Shown in pieces: positions 1-36,942 of a stretch of DNA of 64,000 nucleotides. Each line of letters starts with the position of its first letter. The stretch's first letter is position 1. This DNA comes from Auanema rhodensis (taxonomy: Eukaryota > Animalia > Nematoda), in NCBI GenBank assembly GCA_964057225.1, contig OZ059898.1, positions 16,492,001-16,556,000 on the forward strand, given 5' to 3'. Position numbers and translations under genes: made by a program. The notes below the pieces were generated by a model, which ran no database searches, was not told the DNA's origin, and saw only the letters and a list, made by a program, of their open reading frames with translations.

Positions 1-405
1 TTTTTTTCTACCTTGTTTACCTATGTTGAAGAGTCATTTTTTAGCACCAATGCACGTTATTGCTCAAGTAATATGTTTCTGATTTAATCAACTTATGCTC
101 CTATCTTTTTTATGTTTTTTTATTTATGTTAAATTAAATATAATATGTGGATTTAATAATAACTTACTAATAGAAACAACATATTTTTTTTAGAAATAAG
201 TCCAAAACTTTTTATTCCCACAGGTTGAAATTTGATATAGAAATCTTGAAGACTTTGTTGGTGAAACTGTCGGAAAGTATCGGATTTATGTATTGAGCTT
301 AGATTGAATACTTTCTAACTTGAATGAATTTCTTTGCTTTTCTTCCTCTCAGGTTGATATCGTTGTCGTTTTTGATGTTTTCTTCCAAGTTAAAGCATGT
401 ATTTT

Positions 406-412
406 TTTTCAG
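406..412 (+). promoter_or_regulatory. Candidate SL trans-splice (or 5'UTR intron) acceptor TTTTCAG upstream of the LHFPL6-like gene
   Basis: Perfect nematode acceptor consensus TTTTCAG ending 20 nt before the ATG at 433, preceded by T-rich sequence. Confidence 0.45.
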
Positions 413-432
413 ACCTATTATCGAATTTTGAG

Positions 433-1336
433 ATGGGTGGACTGAATCCTCTTGGGCTTTTTTGGGCTCTAATTTCTGCGATTGCAACTATTTTAATAAG
501 TTATTTTTAATAATCTTTGTAAACTATATATTAATTGTTTCAGTAGGAGGGGTTCTTACCCCCGAATGGCTTATAGGAGAGGTGTCTGCGGATGGAAAAA
601 CTTTGAAAGCGTTTTTTGGTTCTTATAAACGTTGCAACTACCCAGTTTTAGACAAAGTAGTTATTAAGTTACAATAATTTAAATAGTTTACCTCAATATA
701 CAAAAATCAAGGAATCAAACCGCATTGCCCTTGCTGCAGCTTGTGGTCGCTATGAATCATTTACTGCAGTTCCCTCATATTATTGGAAACTTGCAATTTT
801 ATGTGCAGCCTCAGGTAGATAGAAACTAATATTTTTACAGCATAAAAACAATCTTTCAGGTTCATCCCTCTCATTACTTTTGTGTCTCTTGCTACTTCCA
901 TCAATGTGCATACAAGATATTGTGAGTAGTTCAACAGCTCTAGTGGTGGGATGCTTCCAGATCATAGCATGTAATTGAGCGTTTTTCATCATTGTATTAG
1001 AAGTTTTGTTTAAGCCATATTTTTGTCTGCAGCCCTAGTGTTGTATCCACTTGGTTGGGACAATCCAGAAGTTAAGGATGCATGTGGAGAGACAGCTGAT
1101 CGTTTTGCTTTAGGTTAGTTGGCTTAAAAAAAAAAAATAATTTTAAAATACTGTTATTAGGGCGGTGTGAACTGGGCAGATCATTTATAAGCATGGTTGT
1201 TGGAACTTCGATGCTGATTTTTTGCTCTCTGCTCTCAATATGTGGAGGGAAAAAACGTGAATTAAGACTCGATCTGCATTCAGATGGTATGCTCATTCAA
1301 GGATTCGATAATACACGATTAGATTTTGCCAAATAA
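433..1336 (+). CDS. LHFPL6: LHFPL tetraspan family protein (LHFPL6/LHFP-like), 6 exons, ~222 aa
   Basis: Manual splice: join(433..499,544..656,712..814,860..970,1015..1113,1161..1336) = 669 nt, all introns GT-AG and 44-55 nt. Translation MGGLNPLGLFWALISAIAT...PEWLIG...FGSYKRCNYPVLD...CGRYESFTAVPSYYW...YPLGWDNPEVKDACG...FALGRCELG carries the LHFP motifs (FGxxxRCxYP, CGRYxSF, YPxGWDxxEV...CG) and four hydrophobic segments. The acceptor at 711 (AAG) is weak. Confidence 0.9.
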
Positions 1337-2287
1337 TCTCATACTGTTTTTCATATATTTCTTTTATTTTGTTTTTCAAACGGAATTGTACGGGTCATGC
1401 TCTGTTTTGACTATCAATGCTTAGCATACAACACATTTATGCTTCCATTTGGTTCAAACTTATAAAGATTGAATTGCTTTCGCAGAATTAAAAAAAATAA
1501 ATGAATATTTTTTCCACATGTTGGCTCGTCTTTTAATCTTATCCTTTACTTTTCATCGAATCGATTACTCTCGTGGACCCACTTGCCACTTAATATTTTA
1601 TCGCAAATCTATAATTTTAAGTTGAAATCTTTTTTAATTTTTTTATTCAACAACGTTCTTAATTTGTGAAATTGACACAAAATATTTTATTTTAATAATC
1701 ATTTATTTTGAGTATAATGAAAGTTTTAATGAATATCATCCTGCTTGTTGTTATTAGGCTTGATATTTTTTGCAATATTGAATATACAGTCAAATAACAC
1801 CCTCAAATATATATATTCTTTGTTCGATCGTAAGCTATATTTTAGTAAGAAATTCTTAAGAATCTGATATCCTATATTCTTACTCCTTTAGTACTTTTTT
1901 CTTTTTTTATTGTTGTCATATACAGTCCTCATTGTGTTTTAAATTCACTCTTTTTCTACTTAAAGTACAAATTTTTTTAGCTTTAGTTACTTATCGATGA
2001 GCTCAATATTTCAAATAATTATCTACGGGAATCATTTTCATTATACTCTAGTTCGCTTTTATTACCAAGCATTTCATGATCGGTTCCAGGCAATGAAAAA
2101 GTGTCTTAACATTTCTTGACGTTCAAAAAAACCCAAATCTTTCATCCTTTTCAAAACATCTTTTATCGTAATGTGATATCTTCAATCACGTTGCGGTTGT
2201 TTAGCTATAACAAAGGAAAACTGTAAAGATCAATAGTTTGCTTAAAACTCAAAATTAGCCTTTGGCGCTGGTATCGTTTCGCTCACT

Positions 2288-2301
2288 CCCCCCCCCCCCC
2301 C
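2288..2301. repeat. C14 homopolymer (G14 on minus strand; G-quadruplex-capable)
   Basis: 14 consecutive C within a locally GC-rich patch (2260-2400) in otherwise AT-rich intergenic DNA. Confidence 0.85.
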
Positions 2302-4745
2302 ATCTAATCATCAGAGAGTTAACATTAGAGCGCGCGTATAACATTTTGGGCACGGACCACCTTCACATAAACTAGCGGGAGTGCCCTATCCCAAATAGCC
2401 TTTTGATTAATAAATTCGTAAGATATACTAGTGCTTTAAACTAGAGAAAATAACGAAAAATTTGACTTGATATACTATCTTTCCATAATATATAATTACA
2501 AACAACATATGCATAAAAGAAAAAATTGAACATATTCTATCAAGAACTAAGGACAATACTTGCTATGCCTCTTGTCTAGCTTGTTTTTGACAAACAAAAA
2601 ATAATACTTAAAAAGAACTAATGTAAATAAAATATTGAAAATTGTGAGTTAACGTTCGTCAAAATATCAACAAAATATAACACCTTTATTCCAATCTTTT
2701 TTTTTCATTGCCTCTCAAATATTTTCAGTCAATGAAAACTCGAGAATGTAAATCAAAGAAAGAATTATAAAGAAAAGTTGTTGGTTCAGCACGTGTTTTA
2801 TCAGACACAAACACAACAGTATAATGTTTTCATATGTTTCAAAATTTGATTATTTTCTTGTTTTTCTCTCTTGTCAATTGTCAAGACAACCATTACTGCT
2901 ATAATCCTCTCTATTACTTGTAGACACCTTATTTTCCTGTCAAATAAAACTATTTTCTAACCGTTATGGCAGAAATATTCTCTAGAGTTACAAAATACTA
3001 TTTTTGACGAGCTAATTCGCGTTTTTGAGGAACTTATATGTAGACATCTGCTATCATTGAGCTGAGACTTAAGAATTAGATAACAGTTGCTACACGAGAC
3101 TTACGTAAATTCCGCTTTTAAAACTACGAACCTTCGTCAACTGTGAACAATTGCTGCGATTTAATTTTTTCTTATACCTACTCAAGATTGTAATTTAGTT
3201 ATCGCTTTTTTCGTCTTTCAAGTCAAAATTCTATTTTCTTAAGAACCTTAAGATCAATCAGATAAAAATGATGAATTATGTTAGTCTTCGATAGGTAACA
3301 CAGCTACCTAGCTGGCATTTCTTCAAGGTTCATCTTGGCTTTAGCATTCTCATTTCCTCAATCGAGAATAATCGGCAACTTTCATTTTTTAGTTTTCAAC
3401 TTTAAAGTTTATAACCATTGATAGCTTGGCTTCGGAACTTCAACTTTTGTTTTAATGAAAAATATTAAATTATGTGAGCATTTACTATAAATCTTTACAA
3501 TTAGCTTTGCTCATGCTTTAATGAAGCAATAATTTATAAATTGCTGCTTACTAATCAAAAGATAAATTTTCAAGTAAGAAAGCTGTGCTGATCATATAAT
3601 TTACAACCTTCACTTCAGCGTGTGTCGGTAATTCTCTTTTTTTTTCTTTTTTCTTTTTTTTTCATTACTTGAGCTTGATGATTCGAACTGAACTTCACTT
3701 CTTCAAACCTAAAATACTTGATATCTAAGAAACACTTAAAAAATTTTTCTCTTATTTAGATATTTCACAGTTATTTATTAACAAATAAAGAGTAACATTT
3801 ACTTTGAAGAAATAATAATTAACAACTATGTTGAAGCAGAAAGCTTATTTGAGACTTAACCTGTTCTTTCTATCTCATCTTTTCACAACAAGATATTATC
3901 GGCGCCACTGCGAAATACAGTAATTAGTATTCTTTCATATATTTTCTTAAATCCTATCCTAGAAACGTCATAATTCATGAAAACATTTGTATATTCTCAA
4001 AGATACGTTTTCTTGCTTTCAATAATGTCATATCAGCATTTGCAAAATTGTAAATGAGACTTGAAAACACTGCGTTATCTGGTTGATGTAAAGTGAATAT
4101 TATCGCAACTACAAGAAAATAAAGATAGTAACTTTGCCTTTTATTTCTCAACGCAATAATGGACTCCAATAAAATGTTCTGTAACTCATGAGCATATTAT
4201 ATCATAAATATCAAAAGTGATAAACTTCATTGTACAACAAGATTAATACAACAAATGGGAGTTTCTTAATAGGTTTCTTCTATGATAAAGCGATATAATT
4301 ATATTTGTTAAAAAAGTTTATATTTCCGCTTTGATCTAATAGCTTTGACCTCTTAAAAAATATCTCCCTCTTGTTAATTTGATTGAACAAGCAACATGGA
4401 CATATTTCTAGAGTAGAACATAGCATTGAATAAAGACCGAATATTAAATGTTTTATAAAAGAGTTTGTGATATTTCAATAGATGCTTGTTTGTTTTATTA
4501 AAATAAGAAAAAGTTATGAAACGTGAATAAAAGCCGAAATGTTCGCTCTCTTTTTTTAATAATACTTCAAATAAATTTGTGATTTGCTTGCTCTATTCTC
4601 AATTTTGTCAATTTTTACATAGCAACAGTTTCCCTAAAATATTGTTTTAGAGAAAAATCAACGACATAGTTATTGCAAATAGCTTCGCTGGCAGATCCAA
4701 TTCCGATATCAAAGTAAATTGGTAGTGCCACCTACAATTCTCCAG

Positions 4746-5995
4746 ATGATGAATACAGGTATTATTTCAGAGAAGTTTAGTTTTCCAAAGTTTGCGTTTG
4801 AAATTAGCCACATGACCACAAATATCAAATAATCTTGAAGGCACTCATGCTTTTGAGTAATATAAACAGTATGCTTTAAATTTATCTAAGAATATTGATA
4901 AAGTAGTCAACTTTCGTTTCACGTTGTCATGGAAAATAGATAGAAATCCTCATTCGAGCAGTTTACGTGTATGAAAGGAAAATAAACAAAATATCCCATC
5001 TGCGTCTCTGGCTCAAATCTTCACTCTAATTGTCTGTCTCTGCTCGATTGGAAATTTGAATACACTGCTTCCACTATGATCCTCAGCTGTCACATAGATT
5101 TGATGTGTCATTCTCACCCCTAGCCTTTTCTTTTAAAATCAGCTCTTAAAATTTGAAATAATATTTTAAATTTATTCATAGTAATATATAGGTCATGTTT
5201 TAGTATATTAGGATTAATTAAATGTTTATTGTGTTCTTTTGACTGAAAATATTTTTAGAAGTTCCTCTAATATTATCGAAAGATCAGTCTTTGGGTGAGC
5301 CTGTCATTGTTCAAGTACCTTCATACCATAATATATCTGACAACGACGAAAACTCTCCTAAGAGTGACGAAGGTTATTACAGTCCAGTGCTAGGGTGAGT
5401 ATTTCATTGCTTTCTTTCTTTCTTAGCAGTTCTGACTTTTAATCGCATTTTATGTAAGTGTTTTACCCTGCTAACCATATGATGTGTAAGGATGAGGTGT
5501 ATACTTGTGAGAGAGAATTTCACAGCACAAATGTGTACTCAACTGATGCAACTCTCCAACTTAAATATCATAGGTTTCAAAATAAGAATTGACTACAGAA
5601 TATTTTTAGTTCTCGTTCGTTCAGACTCCTTCTAATTTCTAAATGTAATCGTTAAAATAATTGACTGATTGTCTTATTCTCTGCTTTAAGTTTATTGAAA
5701 GTTATCTTGGTTTCTTAAACATTTAGTTTTGTTTTGGTTCATCCATTTTTTTAAAATTTGTACAACATGAACATTTTGCAAATATTACACTTTTTCTAAC
5801 AATTTGGTTTAATGTTTCCTCCCATAGCGGTTCTTTGCACCCTCTGCTTGTTCAGTCTACAGTCCTTTTATAAGCTTCACGACTACAATAATCAAATTCA
5901 GAGACAACCATCTTTCTGCTTTATTACGCATTTCCAAAGACGTTTACAGTCATACGAAAGAAATGGCTAATGAAACTTCTCCTAAAAAATATCAG
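4746..5995 (+). CDS. Putative upstream exons of a long TTD14-like isoform
   Basis: join(4746..4758,5259..5394,5902..5995) splices in frame at GT-AG sites (strong GG|gtgagt donor at 5394, ttcag acceptor at 5901) giving MMNTEVPLILSKDQSLGEPVIVQVPSYHNISDNDENSPKSDEGYYSPVLGDNHLSALLRISKDVYSHTKE, continuing into [11 protein letters not shown]. No homology support is available to me. Confidence 0.5.
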
Positions 5996-7616
5996 GTACG
6001 AATATCTCTGCATAATTTTTCATTTCTGGTCATGTAGGTTTATAAAGTCGTTCTAACCGGTGGACCATGTGGAGGTAAAACAACTGGTATGGATAGACTA
6101 TTTTCATTTTTTGAAAACATGGGATGGAAAGTGTTTACTGTTCCGGAAACTGCTACTATTTTGTTGGGTTCAAAAGTTAAATTCTCTGAGCTGGATGAAA
6201 ACCAAGCTTATACATTCCAAAGAGATTTGTTGAAAACTATGCTCCAAATAGAAGAGGTAATGGTTTTTCCTTTTGTGAAAGACTTCACGATCTTTAGACC
6301 ATTTTCAATCAAGCTCACATGGTTAAAAATCGCAATGTTCTTGTTATTTGTGATCGTGGTGCTATGGATCCATCTGCTTATATGTCAAAAGAAGATTGGA
6401 ATAAACTGCTGGATGATTTGAAAATAGCTGAATTTGATTTAATAAATAATCGCTATAATCAGGTACTAAAAATCATGAAATCATCCTTTATGGTCTTATG
6501 TTAGATTATTCACATGGTTACTGCTGCAGATGGTGCTCATCAGTACTATACTGTAGCAAACAACACTTCTCGCTCTGAAGGTATTGCTGAAGCCAAAGCT
6601 GTTGATGAGAAGACAAGAAGGGTAACTCAGTACGTAAACTAGTTATTTTTATGTTTCTATAGGTTTGGTTGGGACACCCTTATTATGATATAGTTGATAA
6701 TACTGAGTGCTCAAAGTTTGAAGACAAAGTTCTGAAAGCTATTCAGGTAATCTTTTTGAAAAACTAAAGTTAAAATTATTTGATTAGGTAGTATGTGACC
6801 GAACTGGAGTTGATTCTCATGATAGATTAAGTAAGAACAGCAGGTATTTAAGTTTATTTTTTTAAAAATTTTGATCATTATGATATAGAAAGAGGAAATG
6901 GCTTGTTCATTCTATTGATGAGTCACAGTTTGTTAAGTTTGAAGAATACTTAATCAGGCATGATTATTTATTAGCGGACACTTCTTCTGTTCAGGTAATT
7001 CTTTATGATACGGTGGGTACATCTCTTTCTGCACTCAGGTTCGTATCCGTTCTCGTACCCAAATCAACCGTGGTACTAGTTATTCATTGACAACTCGCGT
7101 CTATCATGATGATACGAAGGAATGCATTGAAACCAGGTACATTTCAATATTTTCAGCTGGAATAATCACTCTGTTTTAGAATGCCTATTACATTCCGAGA
7201 ATATACTCGATATTTGGGTATGGTGGATAAAAGTCGTTCAGCTTTATATAAGAAAAGACGGATTTTTATGGTTGGGAGCCAGGTTTCATACTTTATAAAT
7301 TTGAATAATTTTATAATAAAAACTATTTAGTATTTCAATTTGGACATATACACCGACCCACTGCCTCCTGCGGCAGGAAATAAGCATTTAATGTTCTTAG
7401 AGACCTATACAACTCAACCAAAAGGAAATACTTTGCCAATACTTCCTTCATTTTTGAGTGTGGAGAAGGTATCACGATTGTATTTTTGAAATAGTACAAT
7501 TTGTTTAGGAAATCACCGGCGATTCGTCTTTTAGCATGTATTCCTTGGCGAAATTGCCGGGAGTCAAATGCGAACGGGATGAGTTCATTGGAGCTTCGTC
7601 CTTCAGAGATGACTAG
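5963..7616 (+). CDS. Ttd14: TRPL translocation defect 14-like protein (P-loop NTPase of the NadR/Ttd14 AAA_28 type plus CYTH-like C-terminal domain), 11 exons, ~408 aa
   Basis: join(5963..5995,6038..6256,6298..6462,6505..6621,6663..6746,6788..6843,6889..6994,7039..7136,7180..7282,7331..7468,7509..7616) = 1227 nt. Motifs [13 protein letters not shown] (Walker A), [55 protein letters not shown]...SMYSL. Confidence 0.92.
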
Positions 7617-8706
7617 CTTGTCTATTTGAGTATTTTCATGGGATTTCACTTTTTTCTTTCTGATCTACATATGTGATTAGCTTTTTTGTTTTCTAGATTT
7701 TTGTTTTTCGTAAATATTACTCGATTGTCTTCCTTCTTTGGTAATACCCATATCAAAAAGCATAAGCATTTTTTTTACGATTTCAAATGTATCCTTATCA
7801 AGGAGTATTTTGGTTATAATCTGCGTACATGTAATGCCTATTTGAAGTTGTTATAAATTTAAAAAAAAAATATTCATGTGCTATTCGCAATCATACAATG
7901 AACAATAGAAGAATGCAAAACTAGCAGTAGTTCTGTTTCAGATCATCCATAAAACCTAAATTAATAGACAATATATAAACTGAAATGGTTTGGTATAATT
8001 ATAGAATCACTATCTTTCAACCCAATATCAACCCAATTTCCCTAATTCCATAAGCACAAGAACGCAGGACAGTATGTTCTTTAACTATTGAAAATTCATG
8101 TTTTAATGCTATGTAATACAATTAACTGATTACAAACACGATTTAATAGTACTTGCTATCTTAACCGAAATTATAAGCTTCATTTTTAGTGGGGTATTTA
8201 AGTACAGTTATTATTAAGTATGATTAATAGTGTCACATGGCCATCTGAGTTTCATATGAATCCTTTTCATACGAATGGTGCTAATCTCTGCTACAATTCC
8301 CCCAGATATATTACATGAAACATGTCTGACTGAAATAATAATATGATTGCAAGATTTCATTTGATTATGTTTGTGTTCACAAAAAAAATGACCTGGTTAC
8401 TAACATCAGTATAAACTTACAATAAGTTATTTCAGATCTGAAGAACAGATTAGTAGAATACAGAGGAAATATTGAAGAAAAGTTGTGATAGAACATTCAT
8501 ATAAATTTAAGTCAAAAATGTTATCCCACTCTACCGAATCCAATAGAGACCAATGCTTGAAAGAACAAGAGTTTGCTTGGTACTATCGAGCACATTTTAA
8601 TATATATTTCATATAGAAGTGTATATCTAATTGAACATATTTGGAACTCATTAAACTGATTTCTACTTTACTTATTTTCTCGTTTATCAAAAATATATTT
8701 TTGGAT

Positions 8707-9803
8707 TTAAGTATTGATACATCTCACCGCTATTGGACGCGCATCGTGATCTATAATAATAGAAATTGTTGATTTTATTATCTTCTCTTTCCTGAGTTTT
8801 AGATAAGCCAAAAATGATTCGCATAGATTACAAAATTCAGATCCACAAATTTGAGATTTCATCTTCGAACATCCTGTTTCAAATCTAAATTTATAATAGC
8901 GAATGAATATAACTTTGTGAAATGTAAATTTTGCATGATATAACTTTGTTGTTGATAGATTGTCTTTCTCATGATACATTGTCTTGAATGGAATTAACAA
9001 ATCTTTCTGTACATCTAGTTCACCCTCTTCGATAACTGCGGAATTTTCCATTCTGATTCTTCAATCAAGATTTTCAAAGAGACTTTTTCTTTCACTGAGA
9101 ACTTTTCATTAGCTTCAACTATTTTCACTTTGTTTAGTACAAGATTTTCTGGGTTATTCTGTCAAGGCTCTGTGCTAGCTAGTATCTGTGTTTTCTGCAT
9201 ATCACATGAGACATTCAACCAATCTATCAATTATCTAACTAATTCTGATACACTGAGATAGCATTCATCAATTGACATGACAAGTAATCTGACACTTTGA
9301 ATCTCAAGAACAGATGTTGTAGAAGCCTTCTGACTATAGCTAGTCTTCTCTCATGAAACTTGATGGTGTTACAATTATCCTAAAACTTTCTACTGCGAAA
9401 AGCTTCAAGCTGGATTATCCGTAAGTGACGTGCTTCTTCTATGATCACAGTATTCAGCTGTTGGACCTGATTCTAGCTCAAGTTTGCTATGAATTATCTA
9501 TCATCAATGGTTGTTCTTATATCGTTCTTAGCAGGGGTGCGTCATCGCACAACTCCTCAATGTTTATTTATAAACTCATAGAAAACTGTTGATATCTTGC
9601 ATTCAGATGAATCCATATATCACTTCAGATCCGACTAGTGCTTCGGCCCAAATGTATATATTTGCTTTTCTCCCTGGCTTTGATCTGCGTTTATGTTCTG
9701 TTTCAACAAATCTAATTTATAGATAATATATTCACAAAACCAACGAACAATAGCACAAAAAAATATGATAAAAAGGCTCATCGCAGTATTCTCTTTCAAG
9801 CAT
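8707..9803 (-). pseudogene. Decayed gene-like or non-coding transcribed region
   Basis: Minus strand has a T-rich tract, a TTTCAG acceptor (9811-9816), ATG at 9803 (MLEREYCDEPFY...), several short coding-like frames broken by stops, and a 114-aa ORF (8707-9051). No recognisable domain. Confidence 0.3.
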
Positions 9804-10161
9804 CTTTTGACTGAAACAATTTAGCTTCAAAAAAAAATCAATTTCTAATCGATAACAAAAAAACAGAATAATCAAATGTACCGATAGAGAGAGAAAAAAC
9901 GGTCTTGATACTATATACTATGGAAAAACAGAGAAAAAAATAAATTGAAACCACTTCGATAAAATCAACAAAAAAACAGTACTCTAAAAGATAACGTTTA
10001 ACATTCGAACATTTTCTGCACATCTTTTCAATTTAAAAACAGAAAAAACAACTTTTAAACAATTAAATTAAAAGTTAGTTTTCTCACAACAGTCGAATAA
10101 CTTTTATGAACCATCTAGACGACAACCTAGACCTGAACAACGTAACATCCTTGCACCAACG

Positions 10162-10188
10162 TTTAGTTCAGGCTCAGCCAAAACAGAA
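10162..10188. other. Degenerate palindrome TTnnGTTnnGGCTnAGCCnnAACnnAA; candidate DNA-elimination break / telomere-addition motif
   Basis: tttagttcaGGCT-c-AGCCaaaacagaa: 9 of 13 symmetric positions are complementary. The centre AGGCT matches the nematode telomere repeat (TTAGGC)n. The palindrome is directly seen; the function is inferred. Confidence 0.5.
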
Positions 10189-10475
10189 ATCTTATGAAAA
10201 GGTATGAACATCAAATCTCACATATTAACAAGATACAATTCATAAACGTGAACATTTTGATTCTTTTGATTAATTATTGCAACACGACTATTACATTCGT
10301 TTTCAATAACACTATTTGTTTCTTATCGCAATGGTAGCGAGTTCACTCTCCAGTCTTTTGCCTTCTTTATCATTTTTATTTTATCTTAATAACCTTGTTT
10401 AAATTCCACATGTAAATTTCATTGAAAACATGATCTTTTTTATTACAACAAATTCAAGATGAATATTGCATTACC

Positions 10476-10855
10476 TGATGCATTAGTGTATGTTGAGTTT
10501 CCATGTACACTCAACATTGCTTCCAAAAACATTTTGACAAAAATTTTCCCAAAAAATTTCAAAATAATTTAGCAAAAAGTAGATGTTTTTAGATTCCGTT
10601 TTTCAAAGCAAAGACGATGGACAATGTTATTCAACGAAAAAAATAATTCTTCAGGGTGAAAATCGAGGATATAAGTGTGAACTTATATCAGTTGATATCT
10701 CGGTGCATTTTTGAGCTAGCGCAAATCTGATAACACAGATCGACGCAGCTTAAAAATCCGCAACGAATGCACTATACTACATTGAGAAACGCTTAATACA
10801 AAAATTAGTTATGATCGTTTGAAAAATGATGCATTAGTGTATGTTGAGTTTCCAT
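10476..10855. repeat. 351-bp unit bounded by a perfect 29-bp direct repeat (10476-10504 and 10827-10855)
   Basis: tgatgcattagtgtatgttgagtttccat occurs twice, 351 bp apart. The second copy is joined directly to the first satellite base. Internal 9-bp-stem inverted repeats at 10490-10517 and 10668-10689. Confidence 0.8.
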
Positions 10856-13800
10856 TCTCTTTATCTTTCACGTGAAGCGAGTTACATACCAAGTGCACAT
10901 CACGTGTACATTTAATTAGCATAAATTAAAGTTCACGTAAATTTCAAAGTCATGGTTACCATGAACCAATATCAATAAAAATTTGTTTTTAGACTAATAT
11001 GGACATGGGGAATCTAATTTTCAAAACCGCATCTCTTTATCTTTCACGTGAAGCGAGTTACATACCGAGTGCACATCACGTGTACATTTAATTAGCATGA
11101 ATTAAAGTTCACGTAAATTTCAAAGTCATGGTTACCATGAACCAATATCAATAAAAATTTGTTTTTAGACTAATATGGACATGGGGAATCTAATTTTCAA
11201 AACCGCATCTCTTTATCTTTCACGTGAAGCGAGTTACATACCGAGTGCACATCACGTGTACATTTAATTAGCATAAATTAAAGTTCACGTAAATTTCAAA
11301 GTCATGGTTACCATGCACCAATATCAATAAAAATTTGTTTTTAGACTAATATGGACATGGGGAATCTAATTTTGAAAACCGCATCTCTATATCTTTCACG
11401 TGAAGCGAGTTACATACCAAGTGCACATCACGTGTACATTTAATTAGCATAAATTAAAGTTCACGTAAATTTCAAAGTCATGGTTACCATGAACCAATAT
11501 CAATAAAAATTTGTTTTTAGACTAATATGGACATGGGGAATCTAATTTTGAAAACCGCATCTCTATATCTTTCACGTGAAGCGAGTTACATACCAAGTGC
11601 ACATCACGTGTACATTTAATTAGCATGAATTAAAGTTCACGTAAATTTCAAAGTCATGGTTACCATGAACCAATATCAATAAAAATTTGTTTTTAGACTA
11701 ATATGGACATGGGGAATCTAATTTTCAAAACCGCATCTCTTTATCTTTCACGTGAAGTGAGTTACATACCTAGTGCACATCACGTGTACATTTAATTAGC
11801 ATGAATTAAAGTTCACGTAAATTTCAAAGTCATGGTTACCATGAACCAATATCAATAAAAATTTGTTTTTAGACTAATATGGACATGGGGAATCTAATTT
11901 TAAAAACCGCATCTCTTTATCTTTCACGTGAAGCGAGTTACATACCGAGTGCACATCACGTGTACATTTAATTAGCATAAATTAAAGTTCACGTAAATTT
12001 CAAAGTCATGGTTACCATGCACCAATATCAATAAAAATTTGTTTTTAGACTAATATGGACATGGGGAATCTAATTTTGAAAACCGCATCTCTATATCTTT
12101 CACGTGAAGCGAGTTACATACCAAGTGCACATCACGTGTACATTTAATTAGCATGAATTAAAGTTCACGTAAATTTCAAAGTCATGGTTACCATGCACCA
12201 ATATCAATAAAAATTTGTTTTTAGACTAATATGGACATGGGGAATCTAATTTTGAAAACCGCATCTCTATATCTTTCACGTGAAGCGAGTTACATACCAA
12301 GTGCACATCACGTGTACATTTAATTAGCATAAATTAAAGTTCACGTAAATTTCAAAGTCATGGTTACCATGCACCAATATCAATAAAAATTTGTTTTTAG
12401 ACTAATATGGACATGGGGAATCTAATTTTGAAAACCGCATCTCTATATCTTTCACGTGAAGCGAGTTACATACCAAGTGCACATCACGTGTACATTTAAT
12501 TAGCATGAATTAAAGTTCACGTAAATTTCAAAGTCATGGTTACCATGAACCAATATCAATAAAAATTTGTTTTTAGACTAATATGGACATGGGGAATCTA
12601 ATTTTGAAACCCGCATCTCTTTATCTTTCACGTGAAGCGAGTTACATACCAAGTGCACATCACGTGTACATTTAATTAGCATAAATTAAAGTTCACGTAA
12701 ATTTCAAAGTCATGGTTACCATGCACCAATATCAATAAAAATTTGTTTTTAGACTAATATGGACATGGGGAATCTAATTTAGAAAACCGCATCTCTTTAT
12801 CTTTCACGTGAAGCGAGTTACATACCAAGTGCACATCACGTGTACATTTAATTAGCATAAATTAAAGTTCACGTAAATTTCAAAGTCATGGTTACCATGC
12901 ACCAATATCAATAAAAATTTGTTTTTAGACTAATATGGACATGGGGAATCTAATTTTGAAAACCGCATCTCTTTATCTTTCACGTGAAGCGAGTTACATA
13001 CCAAGTGCACATCACGTGTACATTTAATTAGCATAAATTAAAGTTCACGTAAATTTCAAAGTCATGGTTACCATGCACCAATATCAATAAAAATTTGTTT
13101 TTAGACTAATATGGACATGGGGAATCTAATTTAGAAAACCGCATCTCTTTATCTTTCACGTGAAGCGAGTTACATACCAAGTGCACATCACGTGTACATT
13201 TAATTAGCATAAATTAAAGTTCACGTAAATTTCAAAGTCATGGTTACCATGCACCAATATCAATAAAAATTTGTTTTTAGACTAATATGGACATGGGGAA
13301 TCTAATTTTGAAAACCGCATCTCTTTATCTTTCACGTGAAGCGAGTTACATACCAAGTGCACATCACGTGTACATTTAATTAGCATAAATTAAAGTTCAC
13401 GTAAATTTCAAAGACATGGTTACCATGAACCAATATCAATAAAAATTTGTTTTTAGACTAATATGGACATGGGGAATCTAATTGTGAAAACCGCATCTCT
13501 TTATCTTTCACGTGAAGCGAGTTACATACGAAGTGCACATCACGTGTACATTTAATTAGCATAAATTAAAGTTCACGTAAATTTCAAAGTCATGGTTACC
13601 ATGAACCAATATCAATAAAAATTTGTTTTTAGACTAATATGGACATGGGGAATCTAATTTTGAAAACCGCATCTCTTTATCTTTCACGTGAAGCGAGTTA
13701 CATACCAAGTGCACATCACGTGTACATTTAATTAGCATAAATTAAAGTTCACGTAAATTTCAAAGTCATGGTTACCATGAACCAATATCAATAAAAATTT

Positions 13801-16800
13801 GTTTTTAGACTAATATGGACATGGGGAATCTAATTTTGAAAACCGCATCTCTTTATCTTTCACGTGAAGCGAGTTACATACCAAGTGCACATCACGTGTA
13901 CATTTAATTAGCATAAATTAAAGTTCACGTAAATTTCAAAGACATGGTTACCATGAACCAATATCAATAAAAATTTGTTTTTAGACTAATATGGACCTGA
14001 GGAATCTAATTGTGAAAACCGCATCTCTTTATCTTTCACGTGAAGCGAGTTACATACCAAGTGCACATCACGTGTACATTTAATTAGCATAAATTAAAGT
14101 TCACGTAAATTTCAAAGACATGGTTACCATGAACCAATATCAATAAAAATTTGTTTTTAGACTAATATGGACATGGGGAATCTAATTGTGAAAACCGCAT
14201 CTCTTTATCTTTCACGTGAAGCGAGTTACATACCAAGTGCACATCACGTGTACATTTAATTAGCATAAATTAAAGTTCACGTAAATTTCAAAGTCATGGT
14301 TACCATGAACCAATATCAATAAAAATTTGTTTTTAGACTAATATGGACCTGAGGAATCTAATTGTGAAAACCGCATCTCTTTATCTTTCACGTGAAGCGA
14401 GTTACATACCAAGTGCACATCACGTGTACATTTAATTAGCATAAATTAAAGTTCACGTAAATTTCAAAGTCATGGTTACCATGAACCAATATCAATAAAA
14501 ATTTGTTTTTAGACTAATATGGACATGGGGAATCTAATTTTGAAAACCGCATCTCTTTATCTTTCACGTGAAGCGAGTTACATACCGAGTGCACATCACG
14601 TGTACATTTAATTAGCATAAATTAAAGTTCACGTAAATTTCAAAGTCATGGTTACCATGAACCAATATCAATAAAAATTTGTTTTTAGACTAATATGGAC
14701 ATGGGGAATCTAATTTTGAAAACCGCATCTTTTTATCTTTCACGTGAAGCGAGTTACATACCAAGTGCACATCACGTGTACATTTAATTAGCATTAATTA
14801 AAGTTCACGTAAATTTCAAAGTCATGGTTACCATGCACCAATATCAATAAAAATTTGTTTTTAGACTAATATGGACATGGGGAATCTAATTTTGAAAACC
14901 GCATCTCTTTATCTTTCACGTGAAGCGAGTTACATACCAAGTGCACATCACGTGTACATTTAATTAGCATAAATTGAAGTTCACGTAAATTTCAAAGTCA
15001 TGGTTACCATGAACCAATATCAATGAAAATTTGTTTTTAGACTAATATGGACATGGGGAATCTAATTTTGAAAACCGCATCTTTTTATCTTTCACGTGAA
15101 GCGAGTTACATACCAAGTGCACATCACGTGTACATTTAATTAGCATTAATTAAAGTTCACGTAAATTTCAAAGTCATGGTTACCATGCACCAATATCAAT
15201 AAAAATTTGTTTTTAGACTAATATGGACATGGGGAATCTAATTTTGAAAACCGCATCTCTTTATCTTTCACGTGAAGCGAGTTACATACCAAGTGCACAT
15301 CACGTGTACATTTAATTAGCATAAATTAAAGTTCACGTAAATTTCAAAGACATGGTTACCATGAACCAATATCAATACAAATTTGTTTTTAGACTAATAT
15401 GGACATGGGGAATCTAATTTTGAAAACCGCATCTCTTTATCTTTCACGTGAAGCGAGTTACATACCAAGTGCACATCACGTGTACATTTAATTAGCATAA
15501 ATTAAAGTTCACTTAAATATCAAAGTCATGGTTACCATGAACCAATATCAATAAAAATTTGTTTTTAGACTAATATGGACATGGGGAATCTAATTTTGAA
15601 AACCGCATCTCTTTATCTCTCACGTGAAGCGAGTTACATACCGAGTGCACATCACGTGTACATTTAATTAGCATAAATTAAAGTTCACTTAAATATCAAA
15701 GTCATGGTTACCATGAACCAATATCAATAAAAATTTGTTTTTAGACTAATATGGACATGGGGAATCTAATTTTGAAAACCGCATCTTTTTATCTTTCACG
15801 TGAAGCGAGTTACATACCAAGTGCACATCACGTGTACATTTAATTAGCATAAATTAAAGTTCACGTAAATTTCAAAGTCATGGTTACCATGCACCAATAT
15901 CAATAAAAATTTGTTTTTAGACTAATATGGACATGGGGAATCTAATTTTGAAAACCGCATCTCTTTATCTTTCACGTGAAGCGAGTTACAGACCGAGTGC
16001 ACATCACGTGTACATTTAATTAGCATAAATTAAAGTTCACGTAAATTTCAAAGTCATGGTTACCATGAACCAATATCAATAAAAATTTGTTTTTAGACTA
16101 ATATGGACATGGGGAATCTAATTTTGAAAACCGCATCTCTTTATCTTTCACGTGAAGCGAGTTACATACCAAGTGCACATCACGTGTACATTTAATTAGC
16201 ATAAATTAAAGTTCACGTAAATTTCAAAGACATGGTTACCATGAACCAATATCAATAAAAATTTGTTTTTAGACTAATATGGACATGGGGAATCTAATTG
16301 TGAAAACCGCATCTCTTTATCTTTCACGTGAAGCGAGTTACATACCAAGTGCACATCACGTGTACATTTAATTAGCATAAATTAAAGTTCACGTAAATTT
16401 CAAAGTCATGGTTACCATGAACCAATATCAATAAAAATTTGTTTTTAGACTAATATGGACATGAGGAATCTAATTGTGAAAACCGCATCTCTTTATCTTT
16501 CACGTGAAGCGAGTTACATACCAAGTGCACATCACGTGTACATTTAATTAGCATAAATTAAAGTTCACGTAAATTTCAAAGTCATGGTTACCATGAACCA
16601 ATATCAATAAAAATTTGTTTTTAGACTAATATGGACATGGGGAATCTAATTTTGAAAACCGCATCTCTTTATCTTTCACGTGAAGCGAGTTACATACCAA
16701 GTGCACATCACGTGTACATTTAATTAGCATAAATTAAAGTTCACTTAAATATCAAAGTCATGGTTACCATGAACCAATATCAATAAAAATTTGTTTTTAG

Positions 16801-19800
16801 ACTAATATGGACATGGGGAATCTAATTTTGAAAACCGCATCTCTTTATCTCTCACGTGAAGCGAGTTACATACCGAGTGCACATCACGTGTACATTTAAT
16901 TAGCATAAATTAAAGTTCACGTAAATTTCAAAGTCATGGTTACCATGAACCAATATCAATAAAAATTTGTTTTTAGACTAATATGGACATGGGGAATCTA
17001 ATTTTGAAAACCGCATCTCTTTATCTTTCACGTGAAGCGAGTTACATACCAAGTGCACATCACGTGTACATTTAATTAGCATAACTTAAAGTTCACGTAA
17101 ATTTCAAAGTTATGGTTACCATGCACCAATATCAATAAAAATTTGTTTTTAGACTAATATGGACATGGGGAATCTAATTTTGAAAACCGCATCTCTTTAT
17201 CTTTCACGTGAAGCGAGTTACATACCAAGTGCACATCACGTGTACATTTAATTAGCATAAATTGAAGTTCACGTAAATTTCAAAGTCATGGTTACCATGA
17301 ACCAATATCAATGAAAATTTGTTTTTAGACTAATATGGACATGGGGAATCTAATTTTGAAAACCGCATCTTTTTATCTTTCACGTGAAGCGAGTTACATA
17401 CCAAGTGCACATCACGTGTACATTTAATTAGCATTAATTAAAGTTCACGTAAATTTCAAAGTCATGGTTACCATGCACCAATATCAATAAAAATTTGTTT
17501 TTAGACTAATATGGACATGGGGAATCTAATTTTGAAAACCGCATCTCTTTATCTTTCACGTGAAGCGAGTTACATACCAAGTGCACATCACGTGTACATT
17601 TAATTAGCATAAATTAAAGTTCACGTAAATTTCAAAGACATGGTTACCATGAACCAATATCAATAAAAATTTGTTTTTAGACTAATATGGACATGGGGAA
17701 TCTAATTGTGAAAACCGCATCTCTTTATCTTTCACGTGAAGCGAGTTACATACCAAGTGCACATCACGTGTACATTTAATTAGCATAAATTAAAGTTCAC
17801 GTAAATTTCAAAGTCATGGTTACCATGAACCAATATCAATAAAAATTTGTTTTTAGACTAATATGGACATGGGGAATCTAATTTTGAAAACCGCATCTCT
17901 TTATCTTTCACGTGAAGCAAGTTACATACCAAGTGCACATCACGTGTACATTTAATTAGCATAAATTAAAGTTCACGTAAATTTCAAAGTCATGGTTACC
18001 ATGAACCAATATCAATAAAAATTTGTTTTTAGACTAATATGGACATGGGGAATCTAATTTTGAAAACCGCATCTCTTTATCTTTCACGTGAAGCGAGTTA
18101 CATACCAAGTGCACATCACGTGTACATTTAATTAGCATAAATTAAAGTTCACGTAAATTTCAAAGTCATGGTTACCATGAACCAATATCAATAAAAATTT
18201 GTTTTTAGACTAATATGGACATGGGGAATCTAATTTTGAAAACCGCATCTCTTTATCTCTCACGTGAAGCGAGTTACATACCGAGTGCACATCACGTGTA
18301 CATTTAATTAGCATAAATTAAAGTTCACGTAAATTTCAAAGTCATGGTTACCATGAACCAATATCAATAAAAATTTGTTTTTAGACTAATATGGACATGG
18401 GGAATCTAATTTTGAAAACCGCATCTCTTTATCTTTCACGTGAAGCGAGTTACATACCAAGTGCACATCACGTGTACATTTAATTAGCATAAATTAAAGT
18501 TCACTTAAATATCAAAGTCATGGTTACCATGAACCAATATCAATAAAAATTTGTTTTTAGACTAATATGGACATGGGGAATATAATTTTGAAAACCGCAT
18601 CTCTTTATCTCTCACGTGAAGCGAGTTACATACCGAGTGCACATCACGTGTACATTTAATTAGCATAATTAAAGTTCACGTAAATTTCAAAGTCATGGTT
18701 ACCATGAACCAATATCAATAAAAATTTGTTTTTAGACTAATATGGACATGGGGAATCTAATTTTGAAAACCGCATCTCTTTATCTTTCACGTGAAGCGAG
18801 TTACATACCAAGTGCACATCACGTGTACATTTAATTAGCATAAATTGAAGTTCACGTAAATTTCAAAGTCATGGTTACCATGAACCAATATCAATGAAAA
18901 TTTGTTTTTAGACTAATATGGACATGGGGAATCTAATTTTGAAAACCGCATCTTTTTATCTTTCACGTGAAGCGAGTTACATACCAAGTGCACATCACGT
19001 GTACATTTAATTAGCATTAATTAAAGTTCACGTAAATTTCAAAGTCATGGTTACCATGCACCAATATCAATAAAAATTTGTTTTTAGACTAATATGGACA
19101 TGGGGAATCTAATTTTGAAAACCGCATCTCTTTATCTTTCACGTGAAGCGAGTTACATACCAAGTGCACATCACGTGTACATTTAATTAGCATAAATTAA
19201 AGTTCACGTAAATTTCAAAGACATGGTTACCATGAACCAATATCAATAAAAATTTGTTTTTAGACTAATATGGACATGGGGAATCTAATTTTGAAAACCG
19301 CATCTCTTTATCTTTCACGTGAAGCGAGTTACATACCAAGTGCACATCACCTGTACATTTAATTAGCATAAATTAAAGTTCACTTAAATATCAAAGTCAT
19401 GGTTACCATGAACCAATATCAATAAAAATTTGTTTTTAGACTAATATGGACATGGGGAATCTAATTTTGAAAACCGCATCTCTTTATCTCTCACGTGAAG
19501 CGAGTTACATACCGAGTGCACATCACGTGTACATTTAATTAGCATAAATTAAAGTTCACGTAAATTTCAAAGTCATGGTTACCATGAACCAATATCAATA
19601 AAAATTTGTTTTTAGACTAATATGGACATGGGGAATCTAATTTTGAAAACCGCATCTCTTTATCTTTCACGTGAAGCGAGTTACATACCAAGTGCACATC
19701 ACGTGTACATTTAATTAGCATAAATTGAAGTTCACGTAAATTTCAAAGTCATGGTTACCATGAACCAATATCAATGAAAATTTGTTTTTAGACTAATATG

Positions 19801-22800
19801 GACATGGGGAATCTAATTTTGAAAACCGCATCTTTTTATCTTTCACGTGAAGCGAGTTACATACCAAGTGCACATCACGTGTACATTTAATTAGCATTAA
19901 TTAAAGTTCACGTAAATTTCAAAGTCATGGTTACCATGCACCAATATCAATAAAAATTTGTTTTTAGACTAATATGGACATGGGGAATCTAATTTTGAAA
20001 ACCGCATCTCTTTATCTTTCACGTGAAGCGAGTTACATACCAAGTGCACATCACGTGTACATTTAATTAGCATAAATTAAAGTTCACGTAAATTTCAAAG
20101 ACATGGTTACCATGAACCAATATCAATAAAAATTTGTTTTTAGACTAATATGGACATGGGGAATCTAATTGTGAAAACCGCATCTCTTTATCTTTCACGT
20201 GAAGCGAGTTACATACCAAGTGCACATCACGTGTACATTTAATTAGCATAAATTAAAGTTCACGTAAATTTCAAAGTCATGGTTACCATGAACCAATATC
20301 AATAAAAATTTGTTTTTAGACTAATATGGACATGGGGAATCTAATTTTGAAAACCGCATCTCTTTATCTTTCACGTGAAGCGAGTTACATACCAAGTGCA
20401 CATCACGTGTACATTTAATTAGCATAAATTAAAGTTCACGTAAATTTCAAAGTCATGGTTACCATGAACCAATATCAATAAAAATTTGTTTTTAGACTAA
20501 TATGGACATGGGGAATCTAATTTTGAAAACCGCATCTCTTTATCTTTCACGTGAAGCGAGTTACATACCAAGTGCACATCACGTGTACATTTAATTAGCA
20601 TAAATTAAAGTTCACGTAAATTTCAAAGACATGGTTACCATGAACCAATATCAATAAAAATTTGTTTTTAGACTAATATGGACATGGGGAATCTAATTGT
20701 GAAAACCGCATCTCTTTATCTTTCACGTGAAGCGAGTTACATACCAAGTGCACATCACGTGTACATTTAATTAGCATAAATTAAAGTTCACGTAAATTTC
20801 AAAGTCATGGTTACCATGAACCAATATCAATAAAAATTTGTTTTTAGACTAATATGGACATGAGGAATCTAATTGTGAAAACCGCATCTCTTTATCTTTC
20901 ACGTGAAGCGAGTTACATACCAAGTGCACATCACGTGTACATTTAATTAGCATAAATTAAAGTTCACGTAAATTTCAAAGTCATGGTTACCATGAACCAA
21001 TATCAATAAAAATTTGTTTTTAGACTAATATGGACATGGGGAATCTAATTTTGAAAACCGCATCTCTTTATCTTTCACGTGAAGCGAGTTACATACCAAG
21101 TGCACATCACGTGTACATTTAATTAGCATAAATTAAAGTTCACGTAAATTTCAAAGTCATGGTTACCATGAACCAATATCAATAAAAATTTGTTTTTAGA
21201 CTAATATGGACATGAGGAATCTAATTGTGAAAACCGCATCTCTTTATCTTTCACGTGAAGCGAGTTACATACCAAGTGCACATCACGTGTACATTTAATT
21301 AGCATAAATTAAAGTTCACGTAAATTTCAAAGTCATGGTTACCATGAACTAATATCAATAAAAATTTGTTTTTAGACTAATATGGACATGGGGAATCTAA
21401 TTTTGAAAACCGCATCTCTTTATCTTTCACGTGAAGCGAGTTACATACCAAGTGCACATCGCGTGTACATTTAATTAGCATAAATTAAAGTTCACTTAAA
21501 TATCAAAGTCATGGTTACCATGAACCAATATCAATAAAAATTTGTTTTTAGACTAATATGGACATGGGGAATCTAATTTTGAAAACCGCATCTCTTTATC
21601 TCTCACGTGAAGCGAGTTACATACCGAGTGCACATCACGTGTACATTTAATTAGCATAAATTAAAGTTCACGTAAATTTCAAAGTCATGGTTACCATGAA
21701 CCAATATCAATAAAAATTTGTTTTTAGACTAATATGGACATGGGGAATCTAATTTTGAAAACCGCATCTCTTTATCTTTCACGTGAAGCGAGTTACATAC
21801 CAAGTGCACATCACGTGTACATTTAATTAGCATAACTTAAAGTTCACGTAAATTTCAAAGTCATGGTTACCATGCACCAATATCAATAAAAATTTGTTTT
21901 TAGACTAATATGGACATGGGGAATCTAATTTTGAAAACCGCATCTCTTTATCTATCACGTGAAGCGAGTTACATACCAAGTGCACATCACGTGTACATTT
22001 AATTAGCATAAATTAAAGTTCACGTAAATTTCAAAGTCATGGTTACCATGAACCAATATCAATAAAAATTTGTTTTTAGACTAATATGGACATGGGGAAT
22101 CTAATTGTGAAAACCGCATCTCTTTATCTTTCACGTGAAGCGAGTTACATACCAAGTGCACATCACGTGTACATTTAATTAGCATAAATTAAAGTTCACG
22201 TAAATTTCAAAGTCATGGTTACCATGAACCAATATCAATAAAAATTTGTTTTTAGACTAATATGGACATGGGGAATCTAATTTTGAAAACCGCATCTCTT
22301 TATCTTTCACGTGAAGCGAGTTACATACCAAGTGCACATCACGTGTACATTTAATTAGCATAAATTAAAGTTCACGTAAATTTCAAAGTCATGGTTACCA
22401 TGAACCAATATCAATAAAAATTTGTTTTTAGACTAATATGGACATGGGGAATCTAATTTTGAAAACCGCATCTCTTTATCTTTCACGTGAAGCGAGTTAC
22501 ATACCAAGTGCACATCACGTGTACATTTAATTAGCATAAATTAAAGTTCACGTAAATTTCAAAGACATGGTTACCATGAACCAATATCAATAAAAATTTG
22601 TTTTTAGACTAATATGGACATGAGGAATCTAATTGTGAAAACCGCATCTCTTTATCTTTCACGTGAAGCGAGTTACATACCAAGTGCACATCACGTGTAC
22701 ATTTAATTAGCATAAATTAAAGTTCACGTAAATTTCAAAGTCATGGTTACCATGCACCAATATCAATAAAAATTTGTTTTTAGACTAATATGGACATGGG

Positions 22801-25800
22801 GAATCTAATTTTGAAAACCGCATCTCTTTATCTTTCACGTGAAGCGAGTTACATACCAAGTGCACATCACGTGTACATTTAATTAGCATAAATTAAAGTT
22901 CACGTAAATTTCAAAGTCATGGTTACCATGCACCAATATCAATAAAAATTTGTTTTTAGACTAATATGGACATGGGGAATCTAATTTTGAAAACCGCATC
23001 TCTTTATCTTTCACGTGAAGCGAGTTACATACCAAGTGCACATCACGTGTACATTTAATTAGCATAAATTAAAGTTCACGTAAATTTCAAAGACATGGTT
23101 ACCATGAACCAATATCAATAAAAATTTGTTTTTAGACTAATATGGACATGGTGAATCTAATTTTGAAAACCGCATCTCTTTATCTTTCACGTGAAGTGAG
23201 TTACATACCTAGTGCACATCACGTGTACATTTAATTAGCATGAATTAAAGTTCACATAAATTTCAAAGTCATGGTTACCATGAACCAATATCAATAAAAA
23301 TTTGTTTTTAGACTAATATGGACATGGGGAATCTAATTTTGAAAACCGCATCTCTTTATCTTTCACGTGAAGCGAGTTACATACCAAGTGCACATCACGT
23401 GTACATTTAATTAGCATAAATTAAAGTTCACGTAAATTTCAAAGACATGGTTACCATGAACCAATATCAATTAAAATTTGTTTTTAGACTAATATGGACA
23501 TGGGGAATCTAATTGTGAAAACCGCATCTCTTTATCTTTCACGTGAAGCGAGTTACATACCAAGTGCACATCACGTGTACATTTAATTAGCATAAATTAA
23601 AGTTCACGTAAATTTCAAAGTCATGGTTACCATGAACCAATATCAATAAAAATTTGTTTTTTGACTAATATGGACATGGGGAATCTAATTTTGAAAACCG
23701 CATCTCTTTATCTTTCACGTGAAGCGAGTTACATACCAAGTGCACATCACGTGTACATTTAATTAGCATAAATTAAAGTTCACGTAAATTTCAAAGACAT
23801 GGTTACCATGAACCAATATCAATAAAAATTTGTTTTTAGACTAATATGGACATGGGGAATCTAATTTTGAAAACCGCATCTCTTTATCTTTCACGTGAAG
23901 TGAGTTACATACCTAGTGCACATCACGTGTACATTTAATTAGCATAAATTAAAGTTCACGTAAATTTCAAAGTCATGGTTACCATGAACCAATATCAATA
24001 AAAATTTGTTTTTAGACTAATATGGACATGGGGAATCTAATTTTAAAAACCGCATCTCTTTATCTTTCACGTGAAGCGAGTTACATACCAAGTGCACATC
24101 ACGTGTACATTTAATTAGCATAAATTAAAGTTCACGTAAATTTCAAAGTCATGGTTACCATGAACCAATATCAATAAAAATTTGTTTTTAGACTAATATG
24201 GACATGGGGAATCTAATTTTGAAAACCGCATCTCTTTATCTTTCACGTGAAGCGAGTTACATACCAAGTGCACATCACGTGTACATTTAATTAGCATAAA
24301 TTAAAGTTCACGTAAATTTCAAAGTCATGGTTACCATGCACCAATATCAATAAAAATTTGTTTTTAGACTAATATGGACATGGGGAATCAAATTTTGAAA
24401 ACCGCATCTCTTTATCTTTCACGTGAAGCGAGTTACATACCAAGTGCACATCACGTGTACATTTAATTAGCATAAATTAAAGTTCACTTAAATATCAAAG
24501 TCATGGTTACCATGAACCAATATCAATAAAAATTTGTTTTTAGACTAATATGGACATGGGGAATCTAATTTTGAAAACCGCATCTCTTTATCTCTCACGT
24601 GAAGCGAGTTACATACCAAGTGCACATCACGTGTACATTTAATTAGCATAAATTAAAGTTCACGTAAATTTCAAAGACATGGTTACCATGAACCAATATC
24701 AATAAAAATTTGTTTTTAGACTAATATGGACATGGGGAATCTAATTGTGAAAACCGCATCTCTTTATCTTTCACGTGAAGCGAGTTACATACCAAGTGCA
24801 CATCACGTGTACATTTAATTAGCATAAATTAAAGTTCACGTAAATTTCAAAGTCATGGTTACCATGAACCAATATCAATAAAAATTTGTTTTTAGACTAA
24901 TATGGACATGGGGAATCTAATTTTGAAAACCGCATCTCTTTATCTTTCACGTGAAGCGAGTTACATACCAAGTGCACATCACGTGTACATTTAATTAGCA
25001 TAAATTAAAGTTCACGTAAATTTCAAAGTCATGGTTACCATGAACCAATATCAATAAAAATTTGTTTTTAGACTAATATGGACATGGGGAATCTAATTTT
25101 GAAAACCGCATCTCTTTATCTTTCACGTGAAGCGAGTTACATACCAAGTGCACATCACGTGTACATTTAATTAGCATAAATTAAAGTTCACGTAAATTTC
25201 AAAGACATGGTTACCATGAACCAATATCAATAAAAATTTGTTTTTAGACTAATATGGACATGGGGAATCTAATTGTGAAAACCGCATCTCTTTATCTTTC
25301 ACGTGAAGCGAGTTACATACCAAGTGCACATCACGTGTACATTTAATTAGCATAAATTAAAGTTCACGTAAATTTCAAAGTCATGGTTACCATGAACCAA
25401 TATCAATAAAAATTTGTTTTTAGACTAATATGGACATGAGGAATCTAATTGTGAAAACCGCATCTCTTTATCTTTCACGTGAAGCGAGTTACATACCAAG
25501 TGCACATCACGTGTACATTTAATTAGCATAAATTAAAGTTCACGTAAATTTCAAAGTCATGGTTACCATGAACCAATATCAATAAAAATTTGTTTTTAGA
25601 CTAATATGGACATGGGGAATCTAATTTTGAAAACCGCATCTCTTTATCTTTCACGTGAAGCGAGTTACATACCAAGTGCACATCACGTGTACATTTAATT
25701 AGCATAAATTAAAGTTCACGTAAATTTCAAAGTCATGGTTACCATGAACCAATATCAATAAAAATTTGTTTTTAGACTAATATGGACATGAGGAATCTAA

Positions 25801-30610: not shown

Positions 30611-30988
30611 ATCAAAGAACGAAAAATAAAAAGAAAAAGATTTATTTAAAAAAACAAAAAAAAATACAAAAAAATTCAAGAGAAAATTCCAAACTGAAAA
30701 AAATATAAAAAAATTCCTTATCACAATAATTTTAGGACAAAAAACAACTAAATATTGTTTTAATCAGATTACGGTAGTTGATTATCAACAGTTCACTGTT
30801 TACCAACAATCTCTAAATGGAGCGCGATTACTATGGATTGTTTTATCAATGGGTCATTTTATTCAAATTATTCATTTTATTTAATTTTTTCATGAATAAT
30901 TGTTATCTTAATATTTTATATAAATTATATTATATATTTATCTTCATTTATACTATTCCTTTTAGTATCTATAGCCATATTCTTGACA
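30611..30988 (-). repeat. 3' LTR (378 bp)
   Basis: Identical by eye to 36943-37320; reads TGTCAAGAAT...TCTTTGAT on the minus strand. Confidence 0.95.
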
Positions 30989-31000
30989 TCCCCGGCCTCT
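30989..31000 (-). other. Polypurine tract (AGAGGCCGGGGA)
   Basis: Purine-rich 12-mer abutting the TG start of the 3' LTR; contains two C. Confidence 0.7.
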
Positions 31001-31129
31001 CAAATTTCTCGTCCCGAGAAAAAATTCTTCTTATTACTATTTATTCAATAGTTTAACAGTTTCTTTAAAAACAACAATTAAAATAAACATTTACAACATA
31101 CATGAGAAAATTCAAATTTCAACAAGAAA

Positions 31130-36511: not shown

Positions 36512-36926
36512 TTCACCTATCAATGAAAAAAAATTACTAGAAGTTTCCTCTACTAATTTATTGCTATTTGAAAGAATCAAACAAGCACTTATATCAAGAA
36601 AATTGAATTTACTTGATATTAGTTACTACTACCCAAGTTCTGAATGTAGTTCACAGCGGAAGAAATCAGAAAAAGTGTTTAAAAGAAAACACTTTAACCA
36701 AAAACAACCGTACAACAATATAGCAAGAGACACTGTTGTTACCAACACTGTCAAATGATAATTGTTCTGTAAACTTCACTTTTATTCGGCAAATACCAAA
36801 CAAAATTGAATGAATACAAACAGAACCCTATTCAGGTAGCAGTGACTTTTTCACCAAACTCTATTCGAGCTTTCAAACAGGGTTATATGAGCAATTAGCT
36901 CAACCCAAACAATAAAATAGTGAAGA

Positions 36927-36941: not shown

Positions 36942-36942
36942 A

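Follow-up and report, generated by a model that had tools for sequence, protein, structure and literature searches.

Identification of the break site

We conclude with high confidence that positions 10161-10189 of the window (the whole 64,000-nucleotide stretch of DNA that was analysed, C6:16,492,001-16,556,000 of a germline assembly of 180,911,798 bases in 112 contigs) are the Sequence For Elimination (SFE) by which Auanema rhodense chromosome 5 is cut at its right-hand terminal elimination boundary; this chromosome is the 21.64 Mb scaffold C6 and carries the site at 16.50 Mb. The motif and its membership in a family, the exact position of the break, the drop in depth and the assignment of the satellite come from this analysis; the telomeric nature of the added sequence, the loss of AT-1 satellite signal by FISH and the resection and priming chemistry (the last from Oscheius tipulae) are taken from the literature, and a recognising protein is presumed.

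Read directly, TTTAGTTCAGGCTCAGCCAAAACAGAA at 10162-10188 is a degenerate palindrome in which 9 of 13 arm positions pair around a central C at 10175, with GGC and GCC 3 bases apart at the palindrome centre (GGC-TCA-GCC, 10171-10179). In the published layout, and by a leave-one-out matrix score, the SFE is the 29-mer at 10161-10189, made of two 14-base arms around central base 10175. Its conserved core, GGCT-C-AGCC or GGC-N3-GCC (10171-10179), is invariant or nearly so at other boundary sites and holds the putative telomerase priming sequence on both strands. The break and telomere-addition point lies at 10174-10175, between motif positions 14 and 15, as placed by contig ends and by the published coordinate, window base 10174 being C6:16,502,174 and position 14 of the 29-mer. 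The pairing reported by an earlier sequence-only reading of the window, together with all of its distances to the neighbouring repeats, proved correct on re-measurement (288 bp from the palindrome to the start of a 351-bp unit at 10476 and 668 bp to that of a 176-bp array at 10856). That reading was also right that AGGCT on the + strand has the orientation suited to extension as (TTAGGC)n and hence to capping the gene-bearing left side, and TTAGGC repeats are present in the Auanema rhodense assembly.

The two sides of the motif differ sharply, with a tandem-repeat cover of 0.00 to the left of the site versus 0.86 to the right. Positions 1-10174, the retained somatic side, are unique gene-bearing DNA of high depth that is free of tandem repeats, with single high-depth contigs over 7600-10174 in all four sequencing runs compared below. 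The open reading frames in these 10 kb of unique sequence are exon-like, and a Pfam search with eight of them returned only a sub-threshold AAA_28 match at 6319-6504. On the eliminated side, positions 10175-10475 form a unique, germline-limited spacer, delimited by the depth step and without homology to the other boundaries compared.

The published Auanema rhodense system

The site is one of 28 that have been published, and is the example drawn in Fig. 3B of an August 2026 preprint (Gonzalez de la Rosa et al., bioRxiv 10.64898/2026.08.27.747507, here and below as given in its text); the call made from sequence was therefore correct and is not new. The preprint describes a 180.9-Mb germline assembly of which ~61% is eliminated, with four telomere-addition sites per chromosome, and an SFE that is a 29-base palindrome with a variable central base and four conserved residues flanking it, telomeres being added between positions 14 and 15. 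For chromosome 5, its Fig. 3B places telomere-clipped long reads around position 16,502,174, where most reads are clipped, and somatic nuclei are reported to lose the AT-1 FISH signal as of the 12-cell stage. The preprint's text and the present site agree in organism and coordinate, in the 29-base palindrome with its GGCT-N-AGCC core, in the addition point and in the position of AT-1 on the eliminated side, and we see no difference at the level of the site. Consistent with membership in this class, the window has the GGCT-C-AGCC centre, the transition in coverage from gene-rich to repeat-rich DNA and the somatic end at motif position 14. A breakpoint of programmed DNA elimination was thus located to the base by a tool-less reading of raw sequence. 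Little biology is added by this, as the site, the motif, the telomere addition and the satellite loss are all in the 2026 preprint, and the flanking boxes described below are the possible added value.

Read depth across the junction

Logan contigs of four public runs (X1, X3, X7 and X9) from three studies were placed on positions 7600-10855. In all four, a high-depth contig ended exactly at 10174. Depth left of 10174, set against depth at 10216-10433, was 402 and 75 in X1, 57 and 10 in X3, 106 and 0 in X9, and 18 and 2-5 in X7, where each value is the single depth figure that Logan gives per contig and three of the four runs may come from the assembly's own samples. A separate, mismatch-free contig spanned 10145-10504 in X1 and X3 at 0.18-0.19 of the left-side depth (about five-fold shallower), and such a pair of contigs is expected from a de Bruijn graph in which the major, somatic path parts from the minor, germline one at 10175. 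Summed depth rose about 10^5-fold from 10434 rightward, owing to the high copy number of the 351-bp unit. Two contigs (X7 and X9) carried 17-18 unaligned letters past 10174; that the sequence added at 10174 is telomeric is taken from the text of the preprint (10.64898/2026.08.27.747507). The rightward coverage drop that had been predicted from sequence was thus found, with depth falling and contigs breaking at 10174/10175 in four runs from three studies, and the proposed junction between retained and eliminated DNA is supported by a depth step within unique DNA that has genes on its left and satellite on its right.

A motif family at elimination boundaries

Since the search pattern was derived from the site itself, a shuffle test within the window is uninformative, and the genome-wide test is the meaningful one. 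The pattern of the sequence-only reading, allowing at most 2 mismatches, matched 22 places genome-wide versus 0 for its reversed control, and two looser patterns gave 18 versus 1 and 38 versus 4. The matches lay four to a chromosome at expected elimination-boundary positions, on C1 at 5.57, 10.91, 13.34 and 18.00 Mb and on C6 at 3.83, 9.39, 10.67 and 16.50 Mb, the latter number agreeing with the four sites per autosome given in the preprint's text. Further junctions of genes and satellite in this genome thus carry the motif, as had been proposed for other array borders.

A symmetrised matrix (consensus nTTTnGnTnAGGCTnAGCCTnAnCnAAAn) was trained on 12 other boundary sites with the site under study left out. 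It scored 10161-10189 at 35.1 bits, within the 25.9-37.9 bits of the training sites, in a test that is partly circular because these sites had been found with a pattern taken from the scored site. Eight look-alike cores in retained DNA scored 9.9-21.6 bits. The runner-up 29-mer in the 64-kb window reached 6.7 bits, and the matrix scan found no second SFE there. Duplication was considered as the cause of the recurrence and rejected, as BLAST of 9000-11050 against 20 other loci returned homology only from 10476 rightward, that is, in the satellites. With no homology between the SFE flank and other boundaries, the motif is conserved in its own right and not carried by a duplicated segment.

Several further repeats were noted elsewhere in the assembly. 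Six identical SFE-like copies with a 3,495-bp spacing lie at C8:14217199-14234700, inside eliminated X DNA; this spacing matches the 3.5-kb periodic X-chromosome motifs of the preprint, whose text speaks of five in 14 kb. Several boundary sites of central blocks (L023, L026, L027, L031, L035 and L036) have minisatellites of 28-31 bp period less than 5 kb away, and none was seen at terminal boundaries. Short interstitial (TTAGGC)n tracts in both orientations were found scattered over C8:26.31-26.93 Mb, a 600-kb stretch close to the X scaffold's right end, and on the unplaced contigs C72 (19.7-19.9 kb) and C104 (13-33 kb), and there were no long terminal (TTAGGC)n arrays among those listed.

Alternative explanations

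Three other explanations were weighed. The motif might be a back-up SFE whose principal break lies elsewhere nearby, given that extra functional SFEs inside eliminated DNA are described in the preprint (10.64898/2026.08.27.747507) and in the Oscheius tipulae work, and that paired copies of the motif occur at C1:5.57, C1:18.00, C3:5.00 and C8:5.50. We consider this highly improbable, as the depth step and the contig ends fall exactly at 10174, full depth is kept throughout the unique DNA on the left, every other 29-mer in the 64-kb window stays at or below 6.7 bits, and the preprint's text has most reads clipped at this very coordinate.

The position of the step also bears on the idea that a palindrome matched by chance beside a satellite, with the drop caused by under-replicated or poorly recovered heterochromatin. 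Sequencing libraries often contain too little satellite DNA, and degenerate palindromes are common in AT-rich DNA, but the drop starts inside the unique 300-bp spacer, at an identical base in all four runs (three studies); other boundaries carry the motif as well, versus 0-4 matches for reversed controls; and, according to the text of the preprint, AT-1 is physically lost by FISH. The probability that we attach to this idea is negligible, and it is equally negligible for an assembly artefact, or a structural polymorphism that separates haplotypes or strains, as the origin of the junction. Satellite borders are indeed prone to misassembly and the runs carry three organism labels; against this, the mismatch-free, low-depth contig bridging 10145-10504 in X1 and X3 shows that the germline junction exists as assembled, the line was inbred according to the preprint (10.64898/2026.08.27.747507), and the same architecture is found on other chromosomes. 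A principal elimination break at 10174/10175 remains our reading of the site.

Proposed mechanism of break and healing

From about the 12-cell stage on, a sequence-specific factor would bind the palindrome in presomatic blastomeres, and a double-strand break would follow at the palindrome centre. End resection would then leave 3' overhangs ending in GGC(T), on whose GGC telomerase could prime to add (TTAGGC)n, as proposed by analogy with Oscheius tipulae. Extension of the + strand end ...CAGGCT-3' as TAGGCTTAGGC... would in this way cap the gene side, and the left, gene-bearing side would become the end of a somatic chromosome. Healing of the right-hand, satellite side would be transient, and from the 12-cell stage this side would disappear in micronucleus-like bodies. 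It would take with it the 300-bp spacer and the 351-bp repeat, some 5.1 Mb of AT-1 and related satellite, and the retrotransposon embedded there.

Comparison with other nematode elimination systems

Among the closest known systems is the SFE of Oscheius tipulae (Dockendorff et al. 2022; PMC13060919, 2026). It too is a degenerate palindrome of 29 bp, in which GGC and GCC, set 3 bp from each other, serve as telomerase primers, as seems to be the case here; the priming role of GGC/GCC has been shown in Oscheius tipulae. Precise telomere healing and interchangeable sides are further likenesses, as arms beginning TTTAG-T may be. Compared with a partial Oscheius tipulae consensus assembled from the published text (TTTA at 1-4, AGGT at 4-7, GGC and GCC), the arm has TTTAGGT at positions 1-7 in that species versus TTTAGTT at 2-8 here, a one-base shift in register towards the core. 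It was to this SFE that the palindrome had been likened from sequence. The likeness holds in that the two motifs are considered homologous, but they are not identical, the present motif being the Auanema rhodense SFE with a single central base between GGCT and AGCC. The systems differ in extent as well: as far as the texts of the two sources go, cuts in Oscheius tipulae are confined to the vicinity of chromosome ends and 349 kb is lost, whereas Auanema rhodense also cuts internally and removes ~61% of its genome. Necessity and sufficiency of the motif have been established by CRISPR in Oscheius tipulae only.

Precise telomere addition and satellite-rich eliminated DNA are shared with Caenorhabditis auriculariae and C. 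monodelphis, whose SFEs are described as bipartite (PMC13370393). Their two-part motif with a variable gap of 9-68 bp resembles the arrangement of box, gap and core found here, in a comparison made by description, the sequences being published as logos (PMC13370393). In the text of that source, however, the Caenorhabditis motifs are non-palindromic and lie upstream of the addition site in retained DNA, whereas the present motif is palindromic and spans the break, which sets it outside that class. The chromosomal break regions of Ascaris are alike in breakage, de novo telomere healing and somatic loss of satellite, but they have no sequence motif and receive telomeres over 3-6 kb; the base-precise site with its strong motif in Auanema rhodense does not belong with them. 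The preprints on Mesorhabditis and on a survey of Rhabditidae give no motif sequences in their text.

Flanking TGTTCAT-like boxes

Four short boxes surround the motif, all listed on the + strand: ATGAAC (reverse complement GTTCAT) at 10106-10111, 69 bp left of the centre; TGAACA at 10134-10139, 41 bp left; ATGAACA, which points inward, at 10204-10210, 29 bp right; and TGAACA at 10249-10254, 74 bp right. Together (10106-10254) they form the densest cluster of such boxes within the unique 10.5 kb. One or more boxes (GTTCAT or TGTTCA, oriented either way) lay 15-80 bp from the centre at 12 of 13 boundary sites; under the same definition, only 2 of the 8 look-alike cores from retained DNA had one, and the background expectation was about 0.2 per site. 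Among hold-out sites, which were found before the box was searched for and were judged from the short flanks printed by the pattern searches only, a box was present in 12 of 13. Genome-wide, GTTCA-N15-45-GGCTNAGCC occurred 47 times and the opposite orientation 28 times, with 7 and 3 occurrences for the respective reversed controls. The boxes favoured neither the retained nor the eliminated side, with six inward boxes on each. The word GTTCA is also the distal part of many palindrome arms (TGTTCAGGCT), and its presence in both boxes and arms may point to a multimeric factor that reads repeated GTTCA half-sites.

These data raise the possibility, which we put forward tentatively and think rather doubtful, that the break site is larger than the 29-base palindrome and includes boxes as candidate accessory binding sites, some 15-80 bp away, on either arm and in either orientation with inward favoured, by which the machinery could tell true SFEs apart from retained look-alikes. 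If true, the site would be composite, like the bipartite SFEs of Caenorhabditis. Functional boxes would also help to explain why cutting spares some of the retained DNA's high-scoring motif matches, and would narrow the search for the protein or nuclease that binds the SFE. The TGTTCAT-like flanking boxes are possibly new, in that the text of the preprint mentions only AT-rich flanks (10.64898/2026.08.27.747507).

Satellites and a retrotransposon on the eliminated side

The first repeat beyond the spacer is a high-copy terminal satellite with a 351-bp unit (10476-10855, + strand, 1.08 copies), which is 93-94% identical to a 350-bp tandem array of C1 and is probably the AT-2 of the preprint. 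The C1 array lies in the left-terminal block of C1, in the opposite orientation to the 351-bp unit; besides 10476-10855, the comparison of this repeat covered L021:16-1091, L034:5112-5622 and L024:4930-5176. Beyond it, a 176-bp array on the + strand spans 10856-64000 with a single interruption at 30610-37320, its first part (10856-30609) holding 112 copies that are 98% alike and its second (37321-64000) continuing to the end of the window. The AT-1 FISH probe of the preprint matched the window 251 times with a 176-bp period, once per unit, which identifies the 176-bp repeat as AT-1. That the satellite is germline-limited, as had been suggested from sequence, is supported by this identity together with the somatic loss of AT-1 by FISH reported in the preprint's text. 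The order SFE, 351-bp unit, AT-1 is common to three right-terminal boundaries (C6:16.50, C1:18.00 and C5:17.16). The 351-bp unit and AT-1 also have diverged relics, with 71-78% identity, on the eliminated side of a central-block boundary at C6:10.67 Mb (L036:3990-4483); the text of the preprint describes terminal repeats as restricted to chromosome ends (10.64898/2026.08.27.747507), and these relics stand at a central boundary.

The interruption at 30610-37320 is a 6.7-kb LTR retrotransposon on the minus strand, inserted within the AT-1 array, with 379-bp LTRs that are 100% identical and an open reading frame of 1816 amino acids, also on the minus strand. It is flanked by a target duplication of 4-5 bp (GCAC or GCACA), which together with the identical LTRs indicates a very young insertion, and this insertion sits in DNA that somatic cells discard. 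Further into the array, an irregularity at 57929-58855 gave extra TRF periods of 108, 284 and 460 bp, which point to a partial-unit duplication near 58281-58503.
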